Assembly: GCA_018985225.1 (NCBI GenBank)
Contig: JADGIF010000234.1
Coordinates: forward strand, 1-13,376
Direction: 5' to 3'
DNA: 13,376 bases
Origin: Amoeboradix gromovi X-113
Lineage: Eukaryota; Fungi; Sanchytriomycota
In this document: positions 1 through 13,376 of the stretch, one piece after another
Layout of the letters: the number at the start of each line of letters is the position of its first letter
How positions within the stretch are numbered: position 1 is the first letter of the stretch
Position numbers and translations under genes: made by a program
The notes under the pieces: generated by a model
The model's input: the letters and a program-made list of their open reading frames with translations, nothing else
The model's database searches: none
Told to the model about the DNA's origin: nothing

Positions 1-1605
1 AAGAGTAATGATGTTAGTATAGCATTAAATGAATTGAAGAAAGAGTACCGTCTAAGAAAATGCACCTTTTGCTTAGATGCTCAAAGACCTCATATATTTG
101 AAAGAGATGCAGGGTCTTCCAGTTTTATTTTAAAAAGAGGAATACAATCAATGAAAGAAAATTGGTATAATAGAAGATCTTTTATTAATGATTTCCTCCG
201 TATGGAGCACTTCCTTTAAAAGCGAGTTAGTCTAGTTTTTATATTTGGTGTCCCAGATGTAATTCCGAATATGTCAATCTAAAGAAATAACTAACAGGTA
301 CAGCATACATTCATCAGCACTGAGAAACTGGTCCAAACATGGAAGAATTAGATGTCTTTCAATGCCTAGAAGAGATCAACCAAAAAAATAAACATGCGAA
401 CCGTTTATTTAATAATTCTTGTAGTTGGTATTACCGAATATGCGACAATAGAGAGATAATATGGCAGCAAGAAACATATAAAAATATATACATCCTTATT
501 CAATACCGTCTCAGGGTAGTGCAAGAGTAAGAAACCACTTTAACGGATTCACTAGCACTACTAGTTTCTCTTTGCAAATTGTCGATTTTCTCGGAAATCA
601 GGACTTTTAACGAGAAGTCATGTAAAGATTTCCAATATTTTATCATTGTGAATCCGGCGACTGTGGTTTTCTGCCTATATCTCTGTCTTGCTGGCCATTT
701 GGATCGAAATTGTATATGATACGGATAGATCACGGCGCGGTCCTTGAGGGAAAACAAAAAATGAATTTTAATTAGGTAAAATTTGCTTATCGGGCTCCTA
801 ATGAATTAAAAAGCATTTCCAAGCCTAATTTATGCTGGAAAAAGTTTATTGACACCTTACTTCTCCACTAATGAACAAAAGCATTAATTCTTTTGCCTCG
901 TGAAAGTTCTGGTTTTTTAAAAAGCAAATTAGATTCCACAGAGAAAAGACAAAGCCTCTCACTCCGTTTTAGCGATTCACACGCTTTTTAGTACCCGAAG
1001 GAGGGATCGAACAGGGATGCATATTAGTGTATGTTTCTTGGTCAAATATCGCCGCTATCCGCTTTTACATCACAGATTGTGGTTGCATACAAGTTCACGA
1101 ACTATTTGATCACACTTATCGCAGATGGCAATGCTGGTACTATACCTTTGATTGGATTAATCATTTTTGCCAGATTTTCTGGTGTTAACGATGATTCTAG
1201 AGTTAGTGTAACAGTCTCATATAATTGCAAAATATGATTTGGGCACCATCTGATTGACATGTAATTCACATCTCTATTTTTTTCGTCTTTCTCTATCTGT
1301 CCGGTATGTAAAATAGCCACTTAGTTTGCTAGCATTGATGCTTAAATTAGAAAGTAAAATTATTATTTTCCCATTGTTTCACTGTTTCATAGAATCCATG
1401 GGAAATGAGTTGAGCACTACGTTGAGTAAGTCATTTAATTTTGAAGGCCCAGAGATGAAAGGTGGTTTCTGCTGGCAAATTCGCACTGCTACTTAATAAA
1501 ATAATAGATTAATATTTATATAGCCATTGCTTTAATATAAAGGTTAAAATAAATCTTTTAAAGAAATAATTTAAGGATAATAGATGAAACAAAATTCAAA
1601 TCAAT

Positions 1606-1624
1606 GAAAGAAAGAAAGAAAGAA
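1606..1624 (+). repeat. (GAAA)4+ microsatellite
   Basis: gaaagaaagaaagaaagaa read directly from the sequence. Confidence 0.8.
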
Positions 1625-1676
1625 GAGAACTCAATGGGGCCTGTCTAGACGATGTAAATTTCATTTGAAGTACGAG

Positions 1677-1707
1677 CCAATAGTAGAGAGTTGTAATGCT
1701 ATATAAA
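1677..1707 (+). promoter_or_regulatory. Candidate Pol II core promoter (CCAAT box + TATA box)
   Basis: CCAAT at 1677-1681 and TATATAAA at 1700-1707, followed by aaATG at 1728. Such motifs are common by chance in AT-rich DNA. Confidence 0.3.
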
Positions 1708-1727
1708 GAGCAGTTTCCCGTTTCTAA

Positions 1728-1889
1728 ATGACATCTACTATTAAGCGATCAGCAGCAAATCCTGAAACTGATGAACAGTCCAAAAAGATGAATCACGAAG
1801 AGATCATCAATCTGATTACAGATGATGAAGTTTCCGTGGAAAACATTTCTAATGATGATTACATTTTATTACAGGATCGTGGATGTTGA
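1728..1889 (+). CDS. Small acidic ORF (53 aa), or 5' end of a decayed gene
   Basis: MTSTIKRSAANPETDEQSKKMNHEEIINLITDDEVSVENISNDDYILLQDRGC*. It follows a TATA box, and protein-like sequence (IVDVDFENENNNYNLIHLCKAVILSS) continues in a shifted frame. No family recognised. Confidence 0.3.
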   Translation: MTSTIKRSAANPETDEQSKKMNHEEIINLITDDEVSVENISNDDYILLQDRGC

Positions 1890-2709
1890 TTTTGAAAATG
1901 AAAACAATAACTACAATCTCATTCATCTATGCAAAGCAGTCATCCTCTCTTCTCGACAGCTATAACGATCGTCGTGTAAGTGTGATTCTCATTAAAATAT
2001 CAGCAAATCATTTGATGCATCAATTTGAATCTCTTCGGTACTATGTTTCTATCCAAGATATTTAATCTTTTCTTTTAAACTCACTGTTCCTATTATTTTG
2101 TATTGAGTCATAGAAATATAGGATTCATCAATTGCTGGGATATACCGGTTGGTTATTCGTTTTTTAACATTACTTTGAACGAAGTTGATGACCGATTTGA
2201 AAGAATGTTGCTTTTTCACCCGTTTTACTTCACGCTTGGTAATGGAATAACATTTGTAGTAGGCATAGCAGTATTGTTGATCGACAATTCAGTCATTTGG
2301 TTATTCGATTGAATGAAATGCAAGTGTACATGTTATTTATGGAATTTACAAGGTGTCAGGGTTATCAATGTTTGCTATTTTGCAAGCTAAATTTCATATT
2401 TGCTATTTTCTATACGCATTTCTGAGGTGTTTTGTTTCGATGATGCGATTAATAGCGATTCTTATAAACAGGATTTACATTACATGAGTTAAGTTTTAAT
2501 GGGTTATTGTTATCAAATGCACCGGGCGGAATTGTATTTATTTCAACATTGTCATTTTTAATGACGTTTGTAAACCATGTAATTGTGCAATCTTGATACC
2601 AATTCCAGTTTTAAACTGGAGAACATTTCCAGTATAAAGATTAAACTGCATAAAGCGTCATATAGGCAGTATCTTGGTTAACAAATTATTTAATATTTAA
2701 TTCAATTTA

Positions 2710-3543
2710 CTAAAACTGCACGATTTGATAAAGGCTAACACCAAATAACGACATATACGTAAGACATGCTCCATCACTACTTAAACCTTGAGCCTCGCAA
2801 TATGTTTTGGAAATAGAGTTCATTACACCATTCACAGCAGGTAGGCATGCGTTTGGCAATTCGTTTTTACAAGTTAAAATACCACAAACTGCCTTACTGA
2901 TGTCGATAATCTTTGAATCTAAATTTGATGAAAATGATGAGTAGAATCGTCCTATATCCACACCAGTCTGTGATTTTAACACGCGCAGTACCAGCTCGCA
3001 GACAGGGGTCAAGATTGTTTTATCCACAGAATCAGACGCAATTCCGAGCATTTCCCGACATACTACCTTTGACAATGATCCATTGGCTTTGCTACACGTT
3101 CTTTTTGTAGGAAGGATTCTATTCACCACAGTATCACAGAAATTGCTGCTATACCCGACTAAATCCTTGCCTTCTTCTATCAAAGCGCCAATCATATCAT
3201 CACATCCACATTGAGCTCTTTGTAACGATTCCACATTACTACTGGTAGCTTGATTAGTCACTTCCAATAGTGCGTTTTTATAATATTCGTTACATTTAAA
3301 ATCACTTGAAAATTCCACGTAATTAAGCACTAAAGGAAATTTGGATGATGTTGCAAAATCATTCCAAGGAACGTTGCATACGGGATCTTTTGATCCAGAA
3401 CCTTGAAAATCATACGCAGACCAGCAATCATTAGCGCTTGCCCTGCAATAATTACCAGAAGACCAAATAGGATAAAGTCTAGCATTTGATTTGCAACGAG
3501 CAATACAAGCAACAGCACCAAATACTAGAGAAATAAATAACAT
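2710..3543 (-). CDS. Secreted cysteine-rich protein with saposin-like helical domain(s), probably GPI-anchored
   Basis: Uninterrupted ORF. The probable start is the ATG at 3543, giving a signal peptide (MLFISLVFGAVACIA). Many Cys. PVCELVLRVLK..ISKAVCGIL..NACLPAVNGVMNSI.KTYCEAQGL follows saposin-B Cys/helix spacing. The C-terminus SSDG plus hydrophobic tail ACLTYMSLFGVSLYQIVQF resembles a GPI signal. Confidence 0.75.
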   Translation of the reverse strand: MLFISLVFGAVACIARCKSNARLYPIWSSGNYCRASANDCWSAYDFQGSGSKDPVCNVPWNDFATSSKFPLVLNYVEFSSDFKCNEYYKNALLEVTNQATSSNVESLQRAQCGCDDMIGALIEEGKDLVGYSSNFCDTVVNRILPTKRTCSKANGSLSKVVCREMLGIASDSVDKTILTPVCELVLRVLKSQTGVDIGRFYSSFSSNLDSKIIDISKAVCGILTCKNELPNACLPAVNGVMNSISKTYCEAQGLSSDGACLTYMSLFGVSLYQIVQF

Positions 3544-4063
3544 ATAAAATATGTAACAGATTCTGAAAACCAATACGAGCCCAAGACGTGCAGTCATCAC
3601 CAGCGCACCATTTTAGGGCTTTTATGAATTTTGGAATCAATATTATTTACCAATTCCCTATTGGCAGGACCAGCTTCAAAAACAACCAATTTCTGGGTCA
3701 TTAACGCTATATTTCAATCTACAAGTATAACCTGCTATTCCAGTTATGTATTTCTAAGATGTAATAGCATGATGACTAAAAGAATGCGAATAACGGGTTT
3801 TATTGGATATTTTGGTATCGTCAGTATACGAGTTACGTACCTTGGAATTTTCACTAAGAGTTCCAACAGAGACAGCAATTCTTTACTAAATTAGACAGAA
3901 TTGTGCTGGCGGAATATCAATCGCATTATTGGAAGTTCTAATTTTTCGATTATAGGAGTTAGTAAATCTTCATCTTCAAAAAAAAGATTTGTAATGGCTA
4001 GCTTTTTCACGATATGATTTGGTCATGACGTCGTAATCGTTCGCTAGTTTTCTCGTTTGAGTT

Positions 4064-5734
4064 TTATCCCACTGGTACTATTGCTATTAGTCTAGAAAGA
4101 AGCAAGTCAGCCGGTTCTGGGAAGCGATAAGTTCTTTGTTTATTATTATTTTCATTACATTCAAGATGTCTAGGAGAATCTCGACAATTAATCAGTTTTG
4201 CATGCACGATCCTCGCTTTTCTATACTCTTGAATAGTATTTTCGCCCTCATGACAAGAATACTCATGTAATTCAAGCGTTCTAAATTGTTCTACCAAGTT
4301 GAGAACACTGAATGGTTCCTCTTTTGGATAGTCAACAGACGTTTCAAAAACCATAACAACCAGCGGCGTGCTAGGTCCAAACTTCTTTCTTAGATTTTTG
4401 GGTCTTTGTTTTGCATATTCTACTGAGTCTGTTGTATAAAATCCGCTTCCTATGTGCCCAGACGTGCATAGATCTAAATCGATGCCATATTTAAGAATAG
4501 ACTCACAAGAAAAGTAACTGGTACCATGATAGAGCAAGCTTTTTGAGCTGGTAGGATTCAGTTGCATCGAAACGCAGATCTCAACACTTTGGCCTTTTTT
4601 TGGTCGAAGAATTGGTATAGCTTTCTCAAGGTAGATAGAAAAAAATTCATTCTTTTCTTGAATAGAAGTTTCTTCTTCTAAAGTGGGCGTGCGCCAATTT
4701 TTTGAATTATTAGATAGTATGGTAATAATTTCTGAAATAAAAGTATAGTCAATTGTATCTTTTTTGTTACTATAGTGGTATAGGAGAAAATCACCAAATG
4801 AAACTGGTTCCAAGTCATTAGGATCAAAAAAGTTGCAATAAAGATTGTTAGTTTTGTAGTCAATGTTTAAAGCAACAATAAGGCACAACTGCTTCTTTCT
4901 CCAGTCCATCGTTAGTCCTTTAGGAAATTTATAGCGAATATCTGACCCAACTAGCTGTTTAATAATAAGGTTTGTATGAATTGGGCAGTAGAAACTACGA
5001 TCGTGATTTTTAACACAGGCATCTATGGCATGGACTGAATGACAGTCATTTGAAGCATTGCAGAGGAAAGCTACTCCGGAAATAGAAGCTTCTAATATTT
5101 TGTCAACACCTGGAATGATCTCACGATTTTGGTGAGCGGTATAAGATATGGGGCTATGTAGAAAAACTTCAAGTTTGTCATCTAGACCGCGATAAATGCT
5201 AAATGTTTCCGCCTTTTCTTCCATCAATGATTGAACTTTTTCTTTTAATGCTTCCATAATACTATTATCAACGCCTATAATGGGAGAAAAATGAGTAAGA
5301 AGTCCTATGTCTTCTTTTTCTAATCGAAACGTGATGTTTTTTGGAGCATCATAATCAAGAAGAGATTGTCCAGACTTCACGCTTGAAATATCCAAAAAGG
5401 TAGTTACAACTTCTTTATAATTACCCATTATTAAATCGCCACCCATTTTTTTCTGAACTGGCTTTAAGGATATAAATTCAGCATCACCAACAGCTAGTCC
5501 CAGTACATCTTCTTTTTCAACAGCATTATCAAAGTACAAATTGATAGCTGCAGAAGCGTCAAGCAACGTTTGATGTATTTTTCCCTCTGTTTTCAATGAA
5601 GTTAAAGATGAGACTAGATGGTAAAAAAGGGCGTCACCCTCTAGTTCTCTTTTTGTGTACTCTAACCTTGTAGCATAGAATTTCATTCTTTCCTTTTTGT
5701 TTTCAAAATTTGTTTCTTTAAATGACGGAGCCAT
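4064..5734 (-). CDS. 556-aa multidomain protein with a Cys/His zinc-finger-like cluster and a C-terminal ADP-ribosyltransferase-like domain (H-Y clade, PARP/DUF3990-like)
   Basis: Intact ATG-to-TAA ORF. LLYHGTS (H403), SILKYGID, HIGSGFYTTDSVEYAK (Y433) and LVVMVFE match the NAD-binding strands of H-Y ART folds. The terminal QRTYRFPEPADLLL resembles DUF3990-type ends. Cys/His cluster CNASNDCHSVH..C..YCPIH at about 4976-5062. Confidence 0.8.
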   Translation of the reverse strand: MAPSFKETNFENKKERMKFYATRLEYTKRELEGDALFYHLVSSLTSLKTEGKIHQTLLDASAAINLYFDNAVEKEDVLGLAVGDAEFISLKPVQKKMGGDLIMGNYKEVVTTFLDISSVKSGQSLLDYDAPKNITFRLEKEDIGLLTHFSPIIGVDNSIMEALKEKVQSLMEEKAETFSIYRGLDDKLEVFLHSPISYTAHQNREIIPGVDKILEASISGVAFLCNASNDCHSVHAIDACVKNHDRSFYCPIHTNLIIKQLVGSDIRYKFPKGLTMDWRKKQLCLIVALNIDYKTNNLYCNFFDPNDLEPVSFGDFLLYHYSNKKDTIDYTFISEIITILSNNSKNWRTPTLEEETSIQEKNEFFSIYLEKAIPILRPKKGQSVEICVSMQLNPTSSKSLLYHGTSYFSCESILKYGIDLDLCTSGHIGSGFYTTDSVEYAKQRPKNLRKKFGPSTPLVVMVFETSVDYPKEEPFSVLNLVEQFRTLELHEYSCHEGENTIQEYRKARIVHAKLINCRDSPRHLECNENNNKQRTYRFPEPADLLLSRLIAIVPVG

Positions 5735-5952
5735 TGTTTGACACCTTTTTTTGTTTTTTTTGAAAAGTTAATAACGTGATTCGTTATTTAAAGTTTAACT
5801 CAAACCCAAACAATGCAGATTTCAGATCTTTAATCAAATTACATAAGATAAAGAATAATGGCGTTCAGCAGTATTTTAAAGATGATTGAGTACTTAAGGT
5901 AAATATCGTCTTAAAGCCCCAAAAATAAACTATTAAATTTAAATATTCACAC

Positions 5953-7828
5953 TTGGATGTATTCCACACCTAAAGTGAAACGTTTTTTGATCGCAAATGC
6001 TTAAGTTAAAAAGGAGTTGTATTTACTCTGGATACTCTGGTTGAAATTCTCTTGGGACATATCGTTTAGCTTTGATCAAGTCCGTTTTCTTTCTAGCTGT
6101 CAGAGTAGGTGCTTCAAAGACTTCAGGTGTAAATTGGAAGAAGTCAGACTCTGGTGTATTCAAGTCCAAGTCATGTTTGTTCAAATCAACAGTAATCGTT
6201 TCAGCGTCTGACACTAATTTCTTCAGCATGACTTGTCCTGGTAGATCTTTTTTGAACTAACAGACTGATATCCTCGAATTCCAGGAATATCGTCAAAGTA
6301 GTAATTTAATTTAGAACGATAGTCTTTAAAGCGTCTACCTGGAAACACTTTGCATTCGTTTCCGCTAGCGCTTGTTTCAATCAATGCTTTGACTTGTTCC
6401 ACAGTGAATATGTCCTGTAAGGCATATTTCTTCTTAATATGACCAAACCCTGCGTCTGGACTAAATTTTGTATGTCCCTTGATCATAAATCGTATCCCAA
6501 TTGTATCACATTTACCAGTCAAACATAACCATGCCAACAACTTCATCATGGTGTTGTTTTTATTCTGTCCAACACAATTATCTGCAAGCAAAATTAGATG
6601 ACGTCTTTGATCAGATGGTAATAGGAAAATGTAATCAATCAAAAGACTTACAACATTATCACCACCTTTCTTACCATGATCTTCTCTGTAAATATAAGTC
6701 AACTGTTTCTTCTTTGTTTCATTGTAAATACCAAAAAGGTAAATATTCAAAAGAGACAAGAAATACAGTTCTGATGGTTGGTCTTGGAACTGTGGTAATA
6801 CCAAGTTTTGACTATAATCAAACGAAATACAAGTTACGTTCGCCAAGTGTTTACAGCGATTATAATCAAGTCTTGCTACTTTGGCTTGATTTAAATGTTC
6901 TTGGAAATCTCTTGTCAAAGCAATCAAAACTATTTCCGACTCCGTATATTTCATATCGTTCTTGAAAGTGGTACATGTATCGCACATATCTGATCTTGGT
7001 GACCGTATACGAATTGTTTCGCAATCATGAAATAAACGCCGAAAGGTCTCAGACTTAATCTGAATGGCGTTTTCTGAGTTCCAGTATAGTTCATGCAAGC
7101 GAGAAATAGTGTAGTCGCTCGGCAACCATAAATAAGTAACATCTCTTGTTCGACGAGCATTTTTGTAAAGATATTGTCTACCAGGTCTTGGTTCGCCGTG
7201 GGCTTCTGCAAAATTGAAGATAAATTCCTTTACGCAAGCCTTTTGTTCGTCAGTTAAGGCATGTAAAAATCGTATACCCTTGTTACCATGAACGCGAGGT
7301 TTGAACTGCGTTGACAGGTCGTTTGCAATTCTTTGTAATTGCTGTCTTGAGATAGATAACAAATGTACTAAAGCATCTCGACACATTTTGCCAATAGGAT
7401 AGATTTGGTACTTGAACGTTCTGCGCCTTCTGCTTGCTGAATGAGATTGGCAGCTTGTTAAAATACCTTTGATAAAAACATCGTTTTCCTGCTTATTCAA
7501 TGCACGATGCTTGGTTTTGAATTGGGATAAGAAATCAGGTGACGTTAATTGGAAGCATTTTTATGGACAACACTCTAAACTAGAAGTGGTTCTCGTCCAA
7601 TCATCCACGTCAAAGCTATCTTCTGAGGATGTAGTGGAGGTGGAGTGGTGATCAATTTCCTGTGGTGGTTCTTGTGTTGATGTAAACTGGATTCTTAAAT
7701 CTTGGGAGTGAAATGGATTACTTTCGCTGATGTGTGATGTCATGGAGGTGCATTTTTCGAGGGTTTTCTCGCCTTTTATGTATTTTTCAGCCAATTAATG
7801 GATGTGCTTGGTGATATCAATACACCAA
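5953..7828 (-). mobile_element. Sola-like (DDD) cut-and-paste DNA transposon, defective; boundaries tentative
   Basis: Contains the transposase pseudogene. Candidate degenerate inverted ends: ttggatgtatt..cacc (5953-5970) and ggtg..aatacaccaa (7810-7828). No clear target-site duplication. The right end falls where the upstream peptidase frame loses coherence. Confidence 0.6.
6023..7743 (-). pseudogene. Sola-like (DUF7869-type) DDD transposase, disrupted
   Basis: ATG at 7743, in frame with the 425-aa ORF through one TAA at 7561-7563 (LECCP*KCF). Motifs: PRSDMCDTC, ISFDYSQNLVLP, HLILLADNCVGQNKNN, FMIKGHTKFSPDAGFG. A one-base frameshift at about 6248-6260 joins the C-terminus KKDLPGQVMLKK..KKTDLIKAKRYVPREFQPEYPE*. 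Confidence 0.85.
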
Positions 7829-7829
7829 T

Positions 7830-8417
7830 AGATCTTTTAAATATGAAATTATTAGAAAAAATGTTTACATTTTTAGAAGCAAATTGTTTCCACTTTTTTT
7901 CTAGATTCGATCTGTGTGTAGTGAGTTCTTTTTTAAATAAATCTAGGAAATAATCACTAGCTGGTTTTTCAATAATGATAGAGGACTTTTTAATTATAAA
8001 TTCTCCAGTTTCTAAAAGGGCTTTAACTTCTACATTAAAACGAATTATGTCCAAACACTAGTTTTCTAACTCGTTCAGTTTCGGAATCACTGGAGTTAGA
8101 TAATCTCAAAAGCAAAGCAATCGTTTCAACAGTCAAGTGATGACAGTTTCTTGTGAATAGACAATATTTCTCTGCGTATCTCTTAATCAAACTCTTCAGA
8201 TGCTTTTCTTTTAATTCAAAATTTTGAAATTTCTTAATTAGAATACAACCATCTAAATTTGTTTTTTTTGGTAGTATTTTTTTTCAAACTGTGGTTTGCG
8301 TATAGTAAAGTAATAAGCGTGATATTCATCATTGACCAACAAAATTGGTTCAGTGTGAAAAAAGCTAGAAAAATCGGTAATCTTAATCCAAACTTCTTTG
8401 ACTGTAACAGAAGTCAT
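7830..8417 (-). pseudogene. PPPDE/DeSI-like (permuted papain, NlpC/P60-related) cysteine peptidase, frameshifted
   Basis: ATG at 8417 gives MTSVTVKEVWIKITDFSSFFHTEPILLVNDEYHAYYF (His codon 8355-8357). After a one-base shift in the T8 runs (8262-8284) the frame reads ..KYCLFTRNCHHLTVETIALL (NC at 8143-8148), matching the PPPDE Y-x-L-x3-N-C-x-H motif. A second shift near 8055 leads into the ORF-track ORF 7776-8054. Confidence 0.65.
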
Positions 8418-8787
8418 CTTTTGTTTAAGACAAGTATCCTGCTATTTATGCCTATCTAAGACACCTCAAATGGTATTGAGTTGCCAAGAAATTCGCCACT
8501 TTTTGCCCAAAGTTGGCAATGAACGTGGTGTATAGTGCAACCATCTCAAATTAGGCTGTTTGTTCAAAACTTATGGGTATTCATATACTTGTGATAAAAA
8601 TATTTAAAAATATCATCAAGAGCTTAGAATATCTAAAAAGTTTTAAGAGAATCAAATGTATTTATATCTTAAAACAAAAGCGCTGGGTTTCAGACAATTT
8701 GAATCTAAAATCTTTGATATTTAGGTAAATAATATTTATTGATGTTTAAAAAGCTTATGCAGCTTTTTCACTTGGATCGTTCTCTTC

Positions 8788-9951
8788 TTATAAATTTAGT
8801 GTATTAAATTCAGTTGACATAATGAATTCATCTCGTTTGTTTATATATTCTTCTGTTTCTTGCGGGGAGTTTGCATTACAGATAGGCCATTCGTCGCTTT
8901 CAATAAATGCTTTTGTATACTTCAAAGATTCAAAATCGTACTCTTTTTTATATAAAAAAGAAGTATCATTCTTCCATTTTCTTCTTAAATACGCAGTTGC
9001 TGCAAATTGATAAGTCATTGATAAGTCATAAAAAACGTCATCTTCCTCTGCAACTGCTAATTCCCAGTCAATCAAAATTGCACTTTCTTTTACAACAATA
9101 ATGTTGCTCGGCTTGACATCTCTATGGCAAATTTTAAGTTCGTGAGCAAATGTAAGCGCTTTGCTTATATCTTGACAATACTTGTTAATATTAGCTCTAT
9201 GCATTTCCCCCAAAGTCTGTCCAACTGGTGTCATCATAATAAAATTATAATGTGTGCTACCAATAATTGCACTCAGAATGTTATCTTCAACTAAGTAAAT
9301 AATGAACTCGCATTCACCCAACTTCTTTAAAGCTTCGAATTCAACATCCAAATTTTTAGACTTAAATCTTGCCTTTAAAACGACTTCTTTCTGATTGTAG
9401 GTACATTTGAATAAATCTGCTTTCTTTGACTTTCTAGGTCTCAAAATAGTTATATTACTAATTTTCTGATTAGAGCACTCCAAACTTTCCATGTAATCAT
9501 GATGACTAAGCGGCATTGAAAATAAATGATGAAAAGCTTGCTTCGCGTTATCCCAATTAATCTTTGATGACAAAGCAACTTCTATAAACTGCTCTGTTCC
9601 CTCAATCGAAAGAGATAGATCTTTTTTAGCGTTTGTTCGACAAAACTTGATCAAAACAGTCTCGTTAATATCTGTCACTAACATGAATATGATATGTCGA
9701 AGAGGTTGGTATTGAAATATCAATTTGGCGGTTTCGAGTGATTGACCAAGCGCATCTTTATATTTTCGAATAGGATTGGCCCAATCTTGTTTTAATTCAA
9801 TCGTAAAGACAACAGAATTTGAAGTTACATCGGAGAAGCTGTTACAAACAACAGAAACATCCGGCTTGGGATTACCATTAATACCAGAGATAGGGGAATT
9901 ACTAGTATCTACTAATCTAAACTGAGAGTTTGGTGGTAAAAGTTGTTTCAA
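8788..9951 (-). CDS. Uninterrupted part of a Crinkler-like effector: PD-(D/E)xK nuclease-like domain fused to a protein kinase domain
   Basis: N-half: KPDVSVV..VFTIELK..DALGQ..QPLR..LVTD (REase fold). C-half: VVLK, EFEALKKL, ICHRDVKPSNII, LIDWELA (kinase subdomains II, III, VIb, VII). The ORF starts at TTG; its real start appears to lie in the broken header upstream. Confidence 0.8.
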   Translation of the reverse strand: MKQLLPPNSQFRLVDTSNSPISGINGNPKPDVSVVCNSFSDVTSNSVVFTIELKQDWANPIRKYKDALGQSLETAKLIFQYQPLRHIIFMLVTDINETVLIKFCRTNAKKDLSLSIEGTEQFIEVALSSKINWDNAKQAFHHLFSMPLSHHDYMESLECSNQKISNITILRPRKSKKADLFKCTYNQKEVVLKARFKSKNLDVEFEALKKLGECEFIIYLVEDNILSAIIGSTHYNFIMMTPVGQTLGEMHRANINKYCQDISKALTFAHELKICHRDVKPSNIIVVKESAILIDWELAVAEEDDVFYDLSMTYQFAATAYLRRKWKNDTSFLYKKEYDFESLKYTKAFIESDEWPICNANSPQETEEYINKRDEFIMSTEFNTLNL

Positions 9952-10361
9952 AATACTAATAATATGCTTTTGTCTCTGCCTCTTTTTTTATTAAAAGAAA
10001 TGAGTCTTCATCTTTTAATGTAAATTTTGATTCATTGTGATTTTTGCCCAACATTTCTTCAATTTTTAGGCTTGAAGAGCTCTCTAAAATTACATTACCT
10101 TTCGTAACATTCGTTGTAGACTCAATCTTAGCTTTACGACTAGCGTTATTTTTTATCTCGTAGTAATAATCAGTATCCTGAACTTCAAAAGCAGCATCTA
10201 ATTGCTCTCCATTAGTTTTTTCTTTAAATATAGCTATTTGTAGTTGATAAACATTTTTTTGTTTTGCTATCTAGGCTTTTAGGTCACCTATATCTAAGTT
10301 TTCTTCAGATATGAGTTTTAAAACTTTCTAAAGTATTTCGTTCACGTAAGTATACTTTCAT
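9952..10361 (-). pseudogene. Disrupted ubiquitin-like N-terminal header and linker of the Crinkler-like gene
   Basis: ATG at 10361: MKVYLRERNTL / KVLKLISEENLDIGDLKA*IAKQKNVYQLQIAIFKEKTNGEQLDAAFEVQDTDYYYEIK..KKEAE / QKHIISILKQLL. Frameshifts at about 10325 and 9975, TAG at 10271-10273. DIGDLKxxI is a beta-grasp/Ubl helix signature. Confidence 0.65.
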
Positions 10362-10467
10362 GTGTTACAAGGAATAAACTAAATTATTATTTTTTTCTAT
10401 TATATTATATTGTTTAAAAATCAAATTTGAAACAGTCTAATTACTACCAAGATAAATTTATTTTTCA

Positions 10468-10679
10468 AGTCTCGATTTTACAGAGCAATATAGGTGAAAC
10501 CAATCCTAGTCTCGTTTTCATAGAGTAACTTCAAAATTACATTCAATAACATACCATTTTAAGAGTTGTGCTCTGAACATCTTCAAACAAAGATCAGAAA
10601 ATACCCTTTGATTACCACTATTCAAAATCGTCAATTTTGCTTTTTCAAATTTTCTGAGATAGTCTCGTTTTCACAGAGT
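10468..10679. repeat. Three dispersed direct copies of an 18-bp motif AGTCTCGtTTTcAcAGAG
   Basis: agtctcgattttacagag 10468-10485, agtctcgttttcatagag 10508-10525, agtctcgttttcacagag 10661-10678. Copies 2 and 3 match at 19/20 when one flanking base on each side is included. Confidence 0.8.
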
Positions 10680-11169
10680 GCGTCCCATTTGTTGGATTTA
10701 CTGACAAATCGATTAATATGGGAAAATTATGATATATTAACAAAATAATAAACTTGTAATAAACTATGAATCTTTCGCAATCTTTTTCATTTTATTATTT
10801 TAAAATTGATTTAAATCGACGGAGTTGTGACTTGGACCTTTCCAACTTTCAATGGAGAAATATTTCTTCGGGAGTCTACTTTTTTACTTTAAAGATTTCT
10901 TTTAAATAACTTTGATGAAATCAATGATTGGTTTTTTAATTATCATCCCCAAAAAGGGAAACATTATGGAATATTTTCAATATCATCTACGAATGGGAAA
11001 ATGGTCATATAGTTTAGAATTTGAAAGAATATATGAAAACCGGGAAGTTATATTCTTTGAATTTCCTTCGGGAAATCCCCTGTGGGTTGTCAGAAGCACA
11101 GACAGCGACTGCGTCAATTGAATCCCACTCTACGAGAGAGCCATGTAACTATAATCACTAGTATCCATA

Positions 11170-11520
11170 GAGAAGTGAATGACCAAAGAGCCAATACATA
11201 TATAAGTGAGAATATTGATTGAATGACTAGCTATTGGAGTAAATGAATACATACATGAAATAGAACCCTGATTGACCTATCAGCTATTGAAGTAACTGAA
11301 TAGTCACACAGCCATTAAGAATATTATGAACAAGAATTAGAGATGGAATGCATTCTTATATGTGACTGCAAAGGTCTGTACTATGGATCAAGAAGCATAG
11401 ATGGAATCTAATACGTGAATGAATTGGGAGGTATTTCATATGAATGATCAGAGATGGAATGAAATCCTATCAGAGAATGAAGTGGAAGATATCCTGTATT
11501 ATTGATCAAGAGAGAATGAG
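11170..11520 (+). repeat. Degenerate purine-rich tandem repeat tract, possibly a decayed repeat-protein gene
   Basis: 11229-11249 vs 11282-11302 match 19/21; 11339-11359 vs 11450-11470 match 18/21; 11376-11393 vs 11494-11511 match 16/18. Every frame is interrupted by stops. Confidence 0.55.
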
Positions 11521-12222
11521 TATTTAATGAAATAAAATACATTGTTTATGAACAACCATTGTAAGTTATTGTACACAATTAGAACAAGTATCCAACCCAA
11601 ATAGAATTATAAAGGATTAACTGCAGATGAAAATTCAATGAACTCAGATGAACTATACAAATATGATATATAATAAAGATGAATCCGTTGCTTCAAATCA
11701 CATTTATGTGTCATATTATTTCTTGGCTTTCTATACTCACAGAATTATTAGCTGTATATCGGGTAAGGATTAAAATGCAGAGAGTTATTCAGCGCAAAAG
11801 GAATAGCTTGAACCACCTTATATATCAGAATCGATTCATTCACCTTTTAATAAGCTACTACTCTCTGCTCGTCTTCTATCTTTCATATGTCTTGGATTTC
11901 GAATAGCATCTGGGATTTAAGTATACTTGCTATTCGTTCAACGATACTTTACAATCTCATTCATTTCTTTTCTTACGGTTTGGTTATTCATGGATCTCAT
12001 GAACCGATACGAGTTTCAGGAATCAAAGAAAAAATATGAATTAATTTGAAATAAATTAATAAGAGTATTATGGAATTCGTATTTTTACGAGACAAGTTCA
12101 CCAATGATATATGTGGAATGGTAATATTTGGATAACTGCTAAAAAAAAGGAGTTTAGATTTTACGTCTATTTTTTTCATAGTCGTTACATAATATTTTAC
12201 GGGCTCATAAAAAAAAAATAAA

Positions 12223-12486
12223 ATGGCAAGTTTTAAACGTAAACTCTCTAAAAGGAAAAGACAAGAACTATTGTCTGAACTCTTTTGGAATGTATATCCC
12301 AAAAGAGATGACGATAATACCCCGCTTGATATACATGGGTGTATTTATGTGAATAATGGTAGAATAGATTTTAAAACCTCTAATTTTGCACTTACAGAGG
12401 ATAAATATGTATTACTAATGGATTTGAACAAGTATGGCAATTTTATTGACTATGAAACTAATATTCTACGGCTTGTAGCATTGTAG
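12223..12486 (+). CDS. Small hypothetical protein with basic NLS-like N-terminus
   Basis: 87-aa ORF with an A-rich aaaATGG start context and KRKLSKRKR near the N-terminus. No family recognised. Confidence 0.35.
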   Translation: MASFKRKLSKRKRQELLSELFWNVYPKRDDDNTPLDIHGCIYVNNGRIDFKTSNFALTEDKYVLLMDLNKYGNFIDYETNILRLVAL

Positions 12487-12735
12487 TGTTACTACCATTA
12501 CCATTGTAAAATAAATAGATGAAAAGTTAAAATTTGCGGGAAAATAGTGATCAAAAGATCTATTTATTGAACTATTCTTTTCTAGTATCTACTTCTAAAA
12601 CAAATTATATCTTCCATTGTGCTTCTTTACATATACTTCAAGGAAGATTTCTTCAGTTTTATTTTACCAAAATTCTCTTTGAATCCATAAATGCCATACT
12701 ATGATTGTAAAATCAATAGATAAATTTATTATTTA

Positions 12736-13267
12736 TTACAATTCATTCATCATCTTCCCAAACTTTATGCTCTTTGTCATTTTCACTTAATTTACTAATA
12801 ATTGGCTCTAAAATACTCTCAATTTCTTTCTTCTTCTCTTCATAATCCTCTTTTAAGGCATAGTCCAGCTCAATCCCACAGCGCTGATTGTCTCTTTATT
12901 GTCAGCACTTAATTTCCTGTCCAAATCTCCATTTAATTGTTATTGAATAGATACTGATCCAACCATCTCCTTTGCATCCTGAAAATCTTCAACCAGCTTT
13001 TGAATCTCATAGATGCTTAATCTTTCACTATAAATTTCAACGGTAAGTTCTCTTGTCAGGCATAAAAAGTTCATTTAAAAATATCTCGCCATCAATCCTA
13101 AAATGAGACACCCCCCCCAATAATATTGACTTCACCTTTATCCATCTTGTCAAGAAATAAGCAATAGCTGCGGCTGTAGGTTTATTTAAAATTTAATCCG
13201 GCAATGACACCTGCATCTTATGCCTTTCCTAATAAAAGAATGGCAAAGAGAATGCAAAAGCTTTCAT
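12736..13267 (-). pseudogene. KAR2: ER HSP70 (BiP/Kar2) pseudogene with heavy internal deletions
   Basis: Collinear fragments: MKAFAFSL (signal-like), KDAGVIAGLN, ILNKPTAAAIAY, LDKMDKGEVNII, GGG.VS, IDGEIF, LTVEIY.ER, LSIYEIQKLVE, QLNGDLDRKLSADNKETISAV, LKEDYEEKKKEIESILEPIISKL, and EDDEL* after removing a 4-bp TGAA duplication at 12742-12749. Confidence 0.85.
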
Positions 13268-13376
13268 ACACCAGTAAATCAAAGAAGATGTAGTTGTTGG
13301 AACAGTTCAGCAAGACAAGAGTCAGGGAGACTGTCCATAGATTACACTTCAAAGAAATGCAGTGTCTGTAAAAACT

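Follow-up and report, generated by a model that had tools for sequence, protein, structure and literature searches.

What does a long, intact reading frame encode when it carries the motifs of an ADP-ribosyltransferase (ART) and hardly any relative can be found for it? The question is raised by a 13,376-nucleotide stretch of DNA from the sanchytrid fungus Amoeboradix gromovi X-113 (contig JADGIF010000234.1, positions 1 to 13,376; hereafter the window). The gene concerned lies on its minus strand, and we call its product P0001. We find that P0001 is encoded by a real, single-exon nuclear gene of A. gromovi. Its C-terminal ~160-230 residues are most likely an ART domain of the H-Y-[E/D/Q] clade, and amino acids (aa) ~397-556 are predicted to adopt a very divergent ART fold. 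Our preferred reading, which we hold to be a little likelier true than false, is that P0001 is an intracellular His-Tyr-Gln enzyme that uses nicotinamide adenine dinucleotide (NAD+), either as a mono-ART or as an NAD+ glycohydrolase, and whose N-terminal region selects the target. The parts of the gene are as follows.

Positions 4064-5734, minus strand: the whole open reading frame (ORF) of P0001, 556 codons from ATG plus a stop, in a single exon.
Positions 4067-4552, minus strand: the ART-fold core (aa 395-556), with H403 as motif I, Y433 as motif II and Q533 as the probable motif III.
Positions 4553-4747, minus strand: a helical stretch ahead of the first ART strand (aa ~330-394), modeled with low confidence and matched by the N-terminal portion of PARP catalytic domains.
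Positions 4748-5734, minus strand: the N-terminal region (aa 1-329), common only to the relatives P0002, P0003 and P0004 and to a pseudogene in the same genome.
Positions 4976-5062, minus strand: a Cys/His cluster (aa 225-253), with C225, H232, C250 and H253 as candidate ligands, plus H244.

The ORF of P0001 outranks every other ORF in the window, the runner-up having 425 aa. An original prediction, made from the letters of the window alone, had already named it the largest intact one. At 33% G+C, stop codons are expected at a rate of 7.5% per codon in this frame, which puts the chance of such an open frame at ~5 × 10−20 per start. The three motif residues assigned in that prediction all match by codon position: YHGTS begins at aa 402, so that H403 is encoded by CAT at 4526-4528; GSGFYTT begins at aa 429 (Y433, codon 4436-4438); and KQRTYR begins at aa 532 (Q533, CAA codon 4136-4138). 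The DNA of the gene is single-copy in the assembly. A. gromovi lives as an obligate parasite on the yellow-green alga Tribonema, and its genome, obtained from a single sporangium (10.5 Mb, 36.3% G+C, N50 13,376, TransDecoder protein calls), is ~92% complete (PMC8371127). The possibility that the contig is a contaminant, or the frame not a gene, was ruled out by repeat and transposon families that it has in common with more than 40 other contigs. It is further countered by a counterpart of the gene that lies amid sanchytrid housekeeping genes. Repeats occupy both ends of the contig (1-620, as 1-255 and 256-620, and 13306-13369 within a repeat end of 13223-13369, the far-end repeat being the shorter). 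More than 40 other contigs contain them, with 84-95% identity; the assembly probably broke here because of these high-copy ends.

No Pfam family reached its cut-off with P0001; PARP, PTS_2-RNA/Tpt1 and DUF3990 all matched below threshold. PARP (PF00644) scored 16.8 bits with whole P0001 and 18.5 bits with aa 380-556 (gathering cut-off 26.7), and DUF3990 (PF13151) scored 11.4 bits against a cut-off of 32.2. Three relatives of P0001 (P0004, P0005 and P0006) scored 18-31 bits with DUF3990, also under the cut-off. The three sub-threshold matches all cover the stretch from YHGT to GFYTT, and all three families belong to the Pfam clan ADP-ribosyl. A profile of five eukaryotic family members matched DUF3990 in hhalign (98.8%, E = 6.6 × 10−17). 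Against the PDB, the same profile matched PARP13 (E = 6.6 × 10−6), then PARP12, PARP15, PARP10, the tankyrases and exotoxin A (~10−3 to 10−2), with the tankyrase (~4 × 10−3) and PARP13 matches reaching back to profile positions 34-54. H403 aligns on the His of PARP motif I, and Y433 on the motif II Tyr of the PARP G-K-G-x-Y-F-A. Within the family H403-G-T405 (H-x-[ST], motif I) is invariant, and it aligns with the His of PARP15 and the PARP13-position His. P0001 had been set apart from canonical PARPs at the outset, and rightly: no WGR, macro, WWE or PARP-regulatory domain was detected in it, nor any full-length match to a housekeeping PARP.

Structure prediction agrees with the profiles. From the single sequence, AlphaFold2 (AF2) gave an unusable model, with a predicted local distance difference test (pLDDT) value of 30.5. 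A usable one came from a 73-row alignment of the family together with small bacterial and phage ARTs that had been recovered by a joint profile; here pLDDT was 77-94 at aa 400-470 and 74-87 at aa 531-556. We compared this model with 48,161 PDB representatives using VIA-align. The best 46 matches were all ARTs (Z = 5-7.9) and covered aa ~375-556. Tankyrase 2 stood highest (7.9, over 133 residues), followed by KptA (7.8), PARP13 (7.1), and a diphtheria-like toxin and exotoxin A (6.9 each). Others among these 46 were RCD1, PARP10, cholix, RhsP2, ParT, DarT, RES, MbcT, pertussis toxin and LT. Foldseek matches were likewise ARTs throughout, among the matches listed, with a best probability of 0.99 (E = 0.03), and a search of the ESM Atlas returned DUF3990 clusters, including a eukaryotic (cnidarian) one. 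We call the fold an ART because the matches are unanimous and the sequence profiles agree with them, and not on the height of any score. The ART fold that had been proposed for aa 395-556 was thus recovered by structure prediction and Foldseek alike.

Some of these matches point to a particular ART-fold enzyme. P0001 could be a very divergent RNA 2′-phosphotransferase (Tpt1/KptA) with an N-terminal fusion, standing in for a canonical Tpt1. Tpt1 is normally required for fungal tRNA splicing, and a six-frame search of the assembly with PF01885 finds no canonical Tpt1/KptA. The RNA 2′-phosphotransferase profile phrog_5470 matches aa 326-420 (E = 6.6 × 10−8), with P0001 as its sole match in the genome; Pfam PTS_2-RNA (E = 0.03) and an NCBIfam model (E = 5 × 10−4) match the same stretch, and the top Foldseek rows are Tpt1. 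However, the scores lie far under the curated cut-offs (14.8 versus 26 bits; 19.9 versus 239), and the catalytic residues are wrong. The positions of R64 and R119 in Runella Tpt1 are held by Ser and by Thr/Ser, and motif II has a Tyr where Tpt1 has the His of H-H-h. There is no conserved Arg or His ahead of L401, and the Tpt1-like stretch 'GQSVEI' occurs in P0001 only; P0001 is also the one family member in which aa ~330-394 align with part of Tpt1. In the PDB, moreover, the family profile matches PARPs and not Tpt1, and with an assembly ~92% complete a missing Tpt1 proves little. We rejected membership of Tpt1 on the catalytic residues and attribute the likeness to shared fold ancestry, which leaves a Tpt1 function for P0001 barely credible.

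The third catalytic position distinguishes the ART branches from one another. In the model, QRTY (533-536) forms a strand, after which come a helix and the last strand, and PARPs arrange their Glu-bearing and final strands in that order. Genuine DUF3990 proteins finish with T-Q-[FYI]-S-[FI]-H, placed as far from the C-terminus as Q533 is. A permissive hhalign comparison and a MAFFT alignment of 10 sequences each put Q533 on the DUF3990 Gln, invariant in 10/10, in columns of low confidence. Small phage ARTs have an invariant Asp at this position ([YWF]-D-x-S-F). A His-Tyr-Gln site as in DUF3990 is therefore probable, and the likeness to prokaryote-type DUF3990 proteins that was first noticed by eye is upheld here as in the profile comparison. 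Gln is an accepted third residue in the H-Y-[EDQ] ART clade (PMC7955679). The family has a further invariant acid, E472, and the ART core of P0001 is interrupted between strands by an insert of ~60 residues (aa 473-530).

A Gln in place of the acid also fits a different protein altogether: an inactive ART-fold pseudo-enzyme, of the PARP13/ZAP or TASOR kind, that binds NAD+, ADP-ribose or nucleic acid as a sensor or scaffold. The best sequence match among solved structures is the inactive PARP13 domain, one family member (P0003) lacks the motif II Tyr, and TASOR, with L-Y-Q, is listed as inactive (PMC7955679). Yet P0001 keeps both H403 and G-x-G-F-Y, which PARP13 and TASOR have both lost. No family member departs from Q533-R534-x-Y536 or E472, and bacterial DUF3990 proteins likewise keep the Gln without exception, a toxin tip included. 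Such strict conservation of the whole site fits chemistry better, while still being compatible with binding. We consider an inactive P0001 unlikely, though it deserves to be kept in view alongside the enzyme that we prefer.

The target of that enzyme would be chosen by the region ahead of the ART domain. For aa 1-390 we found no match in Pfam (each member, E up to 10), in the PDB profile search or in Atlas features; novelty of the N-terminal fold cannot be claimed, as the model has pLDDT <60 there. The region contains the Cys/His cluster, in which C225, H232, C250 and H253 are conserved; H244 is present in 4/5 members, and C231, H235 and C240 occur in P0001 only. The spacing C225-x6-H232-x17-C250-x2-H253 is kept in 4-5 homologues and has no Pfam or PDB match (pLDDT ~50). 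This C-H-C-H set could be a metal site. The zinc-finger-like cluster of the original prediction is thus present, with four of its residues conserved, but it matches no zinc-finger family or fold.

The same prediction had labeled P0001 an effector or defence architecture. ART domains are frequent in pathogen effectors, and the family is fast-evolving and lineage-restricted. P0001 might then be secreted and injected into the host alga, Tribonema, to ADP-ribosylate host targets, in keeping with the life of an obligate algal parasite (PMC8371127). However, for every family member hydropathy gives neither a signal peptide nor a membrane segment (maximum 15-residue value ≤0.83 in the first 55 residues), and the N-termini are strongly charged. 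P0001 is predicted to be intracellular on this account; the effector label is not backed, and we regard a secreted effector as highly improbable.

How widespread is the family? An exhaustive phmmer search with P0001, covering 1.84 billion protein cluster representatives, returned only nine relatives, of which five or six are eukaryote-like. The three bacterial ones are of the DUF3990 or ART-PolyVal kind (E = 3 × 10−4 to 9 × 10−4). A word-index protein search with the whole of P0001 found only P0001 itself, and with the N-terminal profile only P0004 besides. P0003 (573 aa) is a full-length homologue, collinear with aa 13-520 of P0001. P0002 matches the N-terminal half, whereas P0004, P0005 and P0006 contain the C-terminal domain. 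P0007 is a piece of the pseudogene in the same genome (EukProt Amoeboradix gromovi NODE_245, which is contig C485).

P0002 and P0005 come from one metagenome assembly (ENA ERZ27314334). Illumina adapter sequence ends contigs L011 (3′ end) and L007 (5′ end), where it translates as ...RSEERRVGKE and HSFPTRRSSDL and adds false residues to the C-terminus of P0002; upstream of P0005 the frame continues the homology. The shared assembly, the adapter ends and the continuing homology indicate that the two are halves of one gene. Its neighbors are a RING-finger gene on one side and PX/Vps5, PI-PLC, HLH and PDI genes on the other, and the products are 66% (PI-PLC) and 83% (PX/Vps5) identical to those of A. 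gromovi. The gene is thus an ordinary chromosomal one, belonging to a related sanchytrid. Its identity to P0001 is no more than ~30-33%, so either the family evolves much faster than housekeeping genes do or the pair are paralogues of long standing. Gene order is not conserved: the A. gromovi PX/Vps5 orthologue lies on contig C1173, where there is no ART match. P0004 lies on a contig of 25% G+C (L008, SRR22455130, 4182 bp), next to a 689-aa ORF without an A. gromovi match or Pfam family, and its source organism may not be a sanchytrid.

Across five proteins that are ~30% identical, L401, H403, T405, I413, G417, G429, G431 and F432 are invariant, as are E472, Q533, R534, Y536, L545 and L549. 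The proposal that P0001 is under selection fits these observations, since H403, Q533, R534 and Y536 are unchanged at ~30% identity, whereas many stops interrupt a paralogue elsewhere in the genome. Judged by the sequences recovered, the family is tiny and fast-changing, and it is seen almost only in sanchytrids.

The original prediction also called for a count of paralogues within A. gromovi. The copy of the P0001 gene on C485 has 13 stops and is flanked by a PAP2 gene and a TnpB/Fanzor-like fragment. This fragment encodes 144 aa (L002:2896-3330, minus strand, where L002 is C485:8932-12995) and has a Cas12f1-like TNB domain at 39.8 bits, above the cut-off. C592 and C410 hold further ART fragments, while C567 and C880 each hold an intact ART gene of another type. 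The C567 ORF (573 aa; L017:319-2040, plus strand, with L017 being C567:19132-22626) combines a SWIM-like C-x-C...C-x-H with a His-Tyr-Gln ART (FHAT, GPGFY, IQIKY). Its SWIM-like N-terminus is common to P0006 (27% identity, E = 6 × 10−17) and has no detectable homology to the N-terminus of P0001 (hhalign probability 0.2%). Copies of this gene at 77-80% DNA identity occur on C751 and C1151, the latter truncated and with one stop. The C880 ORF (528 aa; L019:838-2424, plus strand, with L019 being C880:2500-6199) has FFHGT, GSGFYMT and MQLCVK; it scores 25.7 bits with PARP and 19.6 bits with DUF3990, and its N-terminal region is distinct again. The ART kin of A. gromovi show a birth-and-death pattern in transposon-rich DNA.

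In a tree of the ART domains, the P0001-type proteins form one group (91/80). The original prediction had suggested placing P0001 against bacterial DUF3990 proteins. The eukaryotic rows fall outside both of the prokaryotic clades sampled, that of DUF3990 (99/93) and that of the phage His-Tyr-Asp ARTs (97/95), with support of 87/51 and on very long branches. The tree is unrooted, its only PARP-like row is the C880 ORF, and with such long branches it is uninformative on the donor.

Transposon DNA also adjoins P0001 itself.

Positions 5924-7500, minus strand: the P0001-proximal end of a DUF7869 DNA transposon, including a transposase-like ORF at 6223-7500 (Pfam E = 6.8 × 10−17).

The transposase-like ORF lies upstream of P0001 on the same strand, and its family is matched ~70 times across the genome, often by copies that contain stops. 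Contig C558 (3436-5255) carries window positions 5924-7107 (92%) and 10454-10702 (88%), with the intervening 3.3 kb deleted. Because both end stretches are carried there, the element probably spans ~5924 to at least 10702. By the same deletion copy, PPPDE-like fragments (7776-8417; a very weak match, E = 0.04) and a kinase-like ORF (8788-9951) would lie within the transposon and would not be host genes. The P0001 ATG, at 5734, is ~190 bp beyond the transposon end. The description of P0001 as standing among broken effectors is therefore right only in a loose sense: the neighbors are decayed, but they are mostly transposon remains (DUF7869, kinase-like and PPPDE) and not decayed effectors. On the other side of P0001, at 2710-3600 on the minus strand and co-oriented with it, is a Cys-rich ORF of 296 aa, whose N-terminus is hydrophobic and which matches no Pfam family. 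Its product may be secreted or membrane-bound.

Could P0001 then be an accessory or cargo gene of the adjoining transposon, for instance an anti-silencing factor or an addiction toxin? The SWIM plus ART gene on C567 suggests how this might look. It has a ~115-bp repeat (L017:72-190, more than 30 copies) on one side and a DUF7869 transposase gene on the other, it is multi-copy (C751 and C1151), and it looks like transposon cargo. P0001 and the C567 gene are both less than 1 kb from a DUF7869 transposase gene. P0001, however, is single-copy in its DNA, and the C558 match to the transposon (92%) ends at 5924, short of the ATG. The order of the gene and the transposase is opposite at the P0001 and C567 loci, and of ~45 transposase loci only 2 lie close to an ART gene. 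Neither the C485 pseudogene nor the counterpart in the related sanchytrid has a DUF7869 neighbor. That P0001 is cargo of this element is, in our judgment, quite unlikely.

We therefore return to the intracellular His-Tyr-Gln enzyme. For P0001 we infer NAD+ use, mono-ART or NADase chemistry, and metal binding. In this scheme, NAD+ would be held by H403 and Y433, and Q533 would stand at the start of the strand that bears the Glu of PARPs and diphtheria toxin. The ~330 N-terminal residues, with their possibly metal-binding C-H-C-H cluster, would select the target. A single ADP-ribose would be moved to a protein or nucleic acid, or NAD+ would be hydrolyzed. The family, being lineage-restricted, fast-evolving and unstable in copy number, may serve genetic conflict, in defence or on behalf of selfish elements. 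We infer this role because the family shows a birth-and-death pattern and because its bacterial relatives appear as candidate phage defence proteins and as a toxin tip: DUF3990 matches the PADLOC candidate defence proteins PDC-M13A/B and forms the tip of an Rhs toxin in Serratia (PMC4524185).

Several points weigh against this reading. P0001 reaches the cut-off of no curated family. The structural Z values are middling (<8, which can mean no more than a common arrangement) and the Foldseek E-values weak (≥0.03), and the AF2 model is unreliable for aa 473-530 and the whole N-terminal part, where pLDDT is <60. The placement of Q533 depends on strand order in the model and on low-confidence alignment columns, and in P0003 a Ser replaces Y433. 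Changing Glu to Gln in diphtheria toxin and in PARP1 sharply cuts transferase activity. With Gln for the catalytic acid, P0001 might have little enzymatic activity or might do no more than bind. As for the conflict role, its whole basis is the evolutionary pattern and the bacterial annotations.

ARTs are central in toxins, antiviral defence and DNA-damage signaling. P0001 is probably a eukaryotic, multi-domain representative of the DUF3990-type branch, in a little-studied fungal phylum. For this His-Tyr-Gln branch we know of no activity in any organism; an active P0001 would reveal the function of Gln-type ARTs. The differing N-terminal modules of the paralogues hint at the mode of target choice. 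A bolder view, which we hold to be unlikely, is that sanchytrids keep a diversifying set of His-Tyr-Gln ARTs as a eukaryotic conflict system, immune or selfish, that ADP-ribosylates the nucleic acids or proteins of invaders. If so, at least three unrelated N-terminal modules (C-H-C-H, SWIM and that of C880) would be mounted on one enzymatic head, and at least one type would ride a DNA transposon. The set would then parallel the bacterial DUF3990 and DarT-like toxins. If the transposon link is real, the interplay of eukaryotic transposons with their hosts would gain an NAD+-based weapon. If P0001 is inert, it would be another lineage-specific orphan of a fast-evolving parasite.

P0001 resembles several known ART systems, each in part. 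With the catalytic domains of PARPs 10, 12, 13, 14 and 15 and the tankyrases it has in common the fold, the motif I His and the motif II Tyr; it differs in having Gln at motif III in place of Glu, Ile, Leu or Tyr, and in lacking WGR, regulatory, macro, WWE and CCCH domains. Tpt1/KptA (PF01885) has the same ART lobe, similar surroundings of H-G-T and, in P0001, a likeness over the ~70 residues before it (root-mean-square deviation to KptA 3.0 over 87 residues), whereas P0001 lacks the Arg-His-Arg-Arg catalytic set and has Tyr, not His, at motif II. Diphtheria toxin and exotoxin A belong to the H-Y-E clade and have motifs in the style of Y-H-G-T and G-F-Y-[ST]-T (Z = 6.3-6.9; exotoxin A profile match ~2 × 10−3). 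Unlike them, P0001 has no receptor-binding or translocation domain and no secretion signal, and Gln replaces the catalytic Glu; none of its features points to toxicity toward animals.

The small ARTs of ~150 aa from phages and bacteria (ART-PolyVal-like, some labeled PARP) have Y-H-G-T, G-x-G-F-Y-T-T and a core of the same length. The phmmer search linked P0001 to two of its bacterial relatives (P0008 and P0010) at E = 3 × 10−4 to 9 × 10−4, and the joint profile recovered more than 150 small ARTs. They differ from P0001 in their third-position Asp and in forming their own well-supported clade (97/95). DUF3990 proteins share L-Y-H-G-T, G-x-G-F-Y-T-T and, probably, a Gln that opens the penultimate strand ~20 residues from the C-terminus. 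Bacterial DUF3990 proteins are ~150-190 aa long, whereas P0001 has an insert of ~60 residues and an N-terminus of ~330. P0001 differs from all of these systems: it scores below every curated model, combines a new N-terminal region with an insert in the ART domain, and has fewer than 10 detectable relatives in 1.84 billion representatives.

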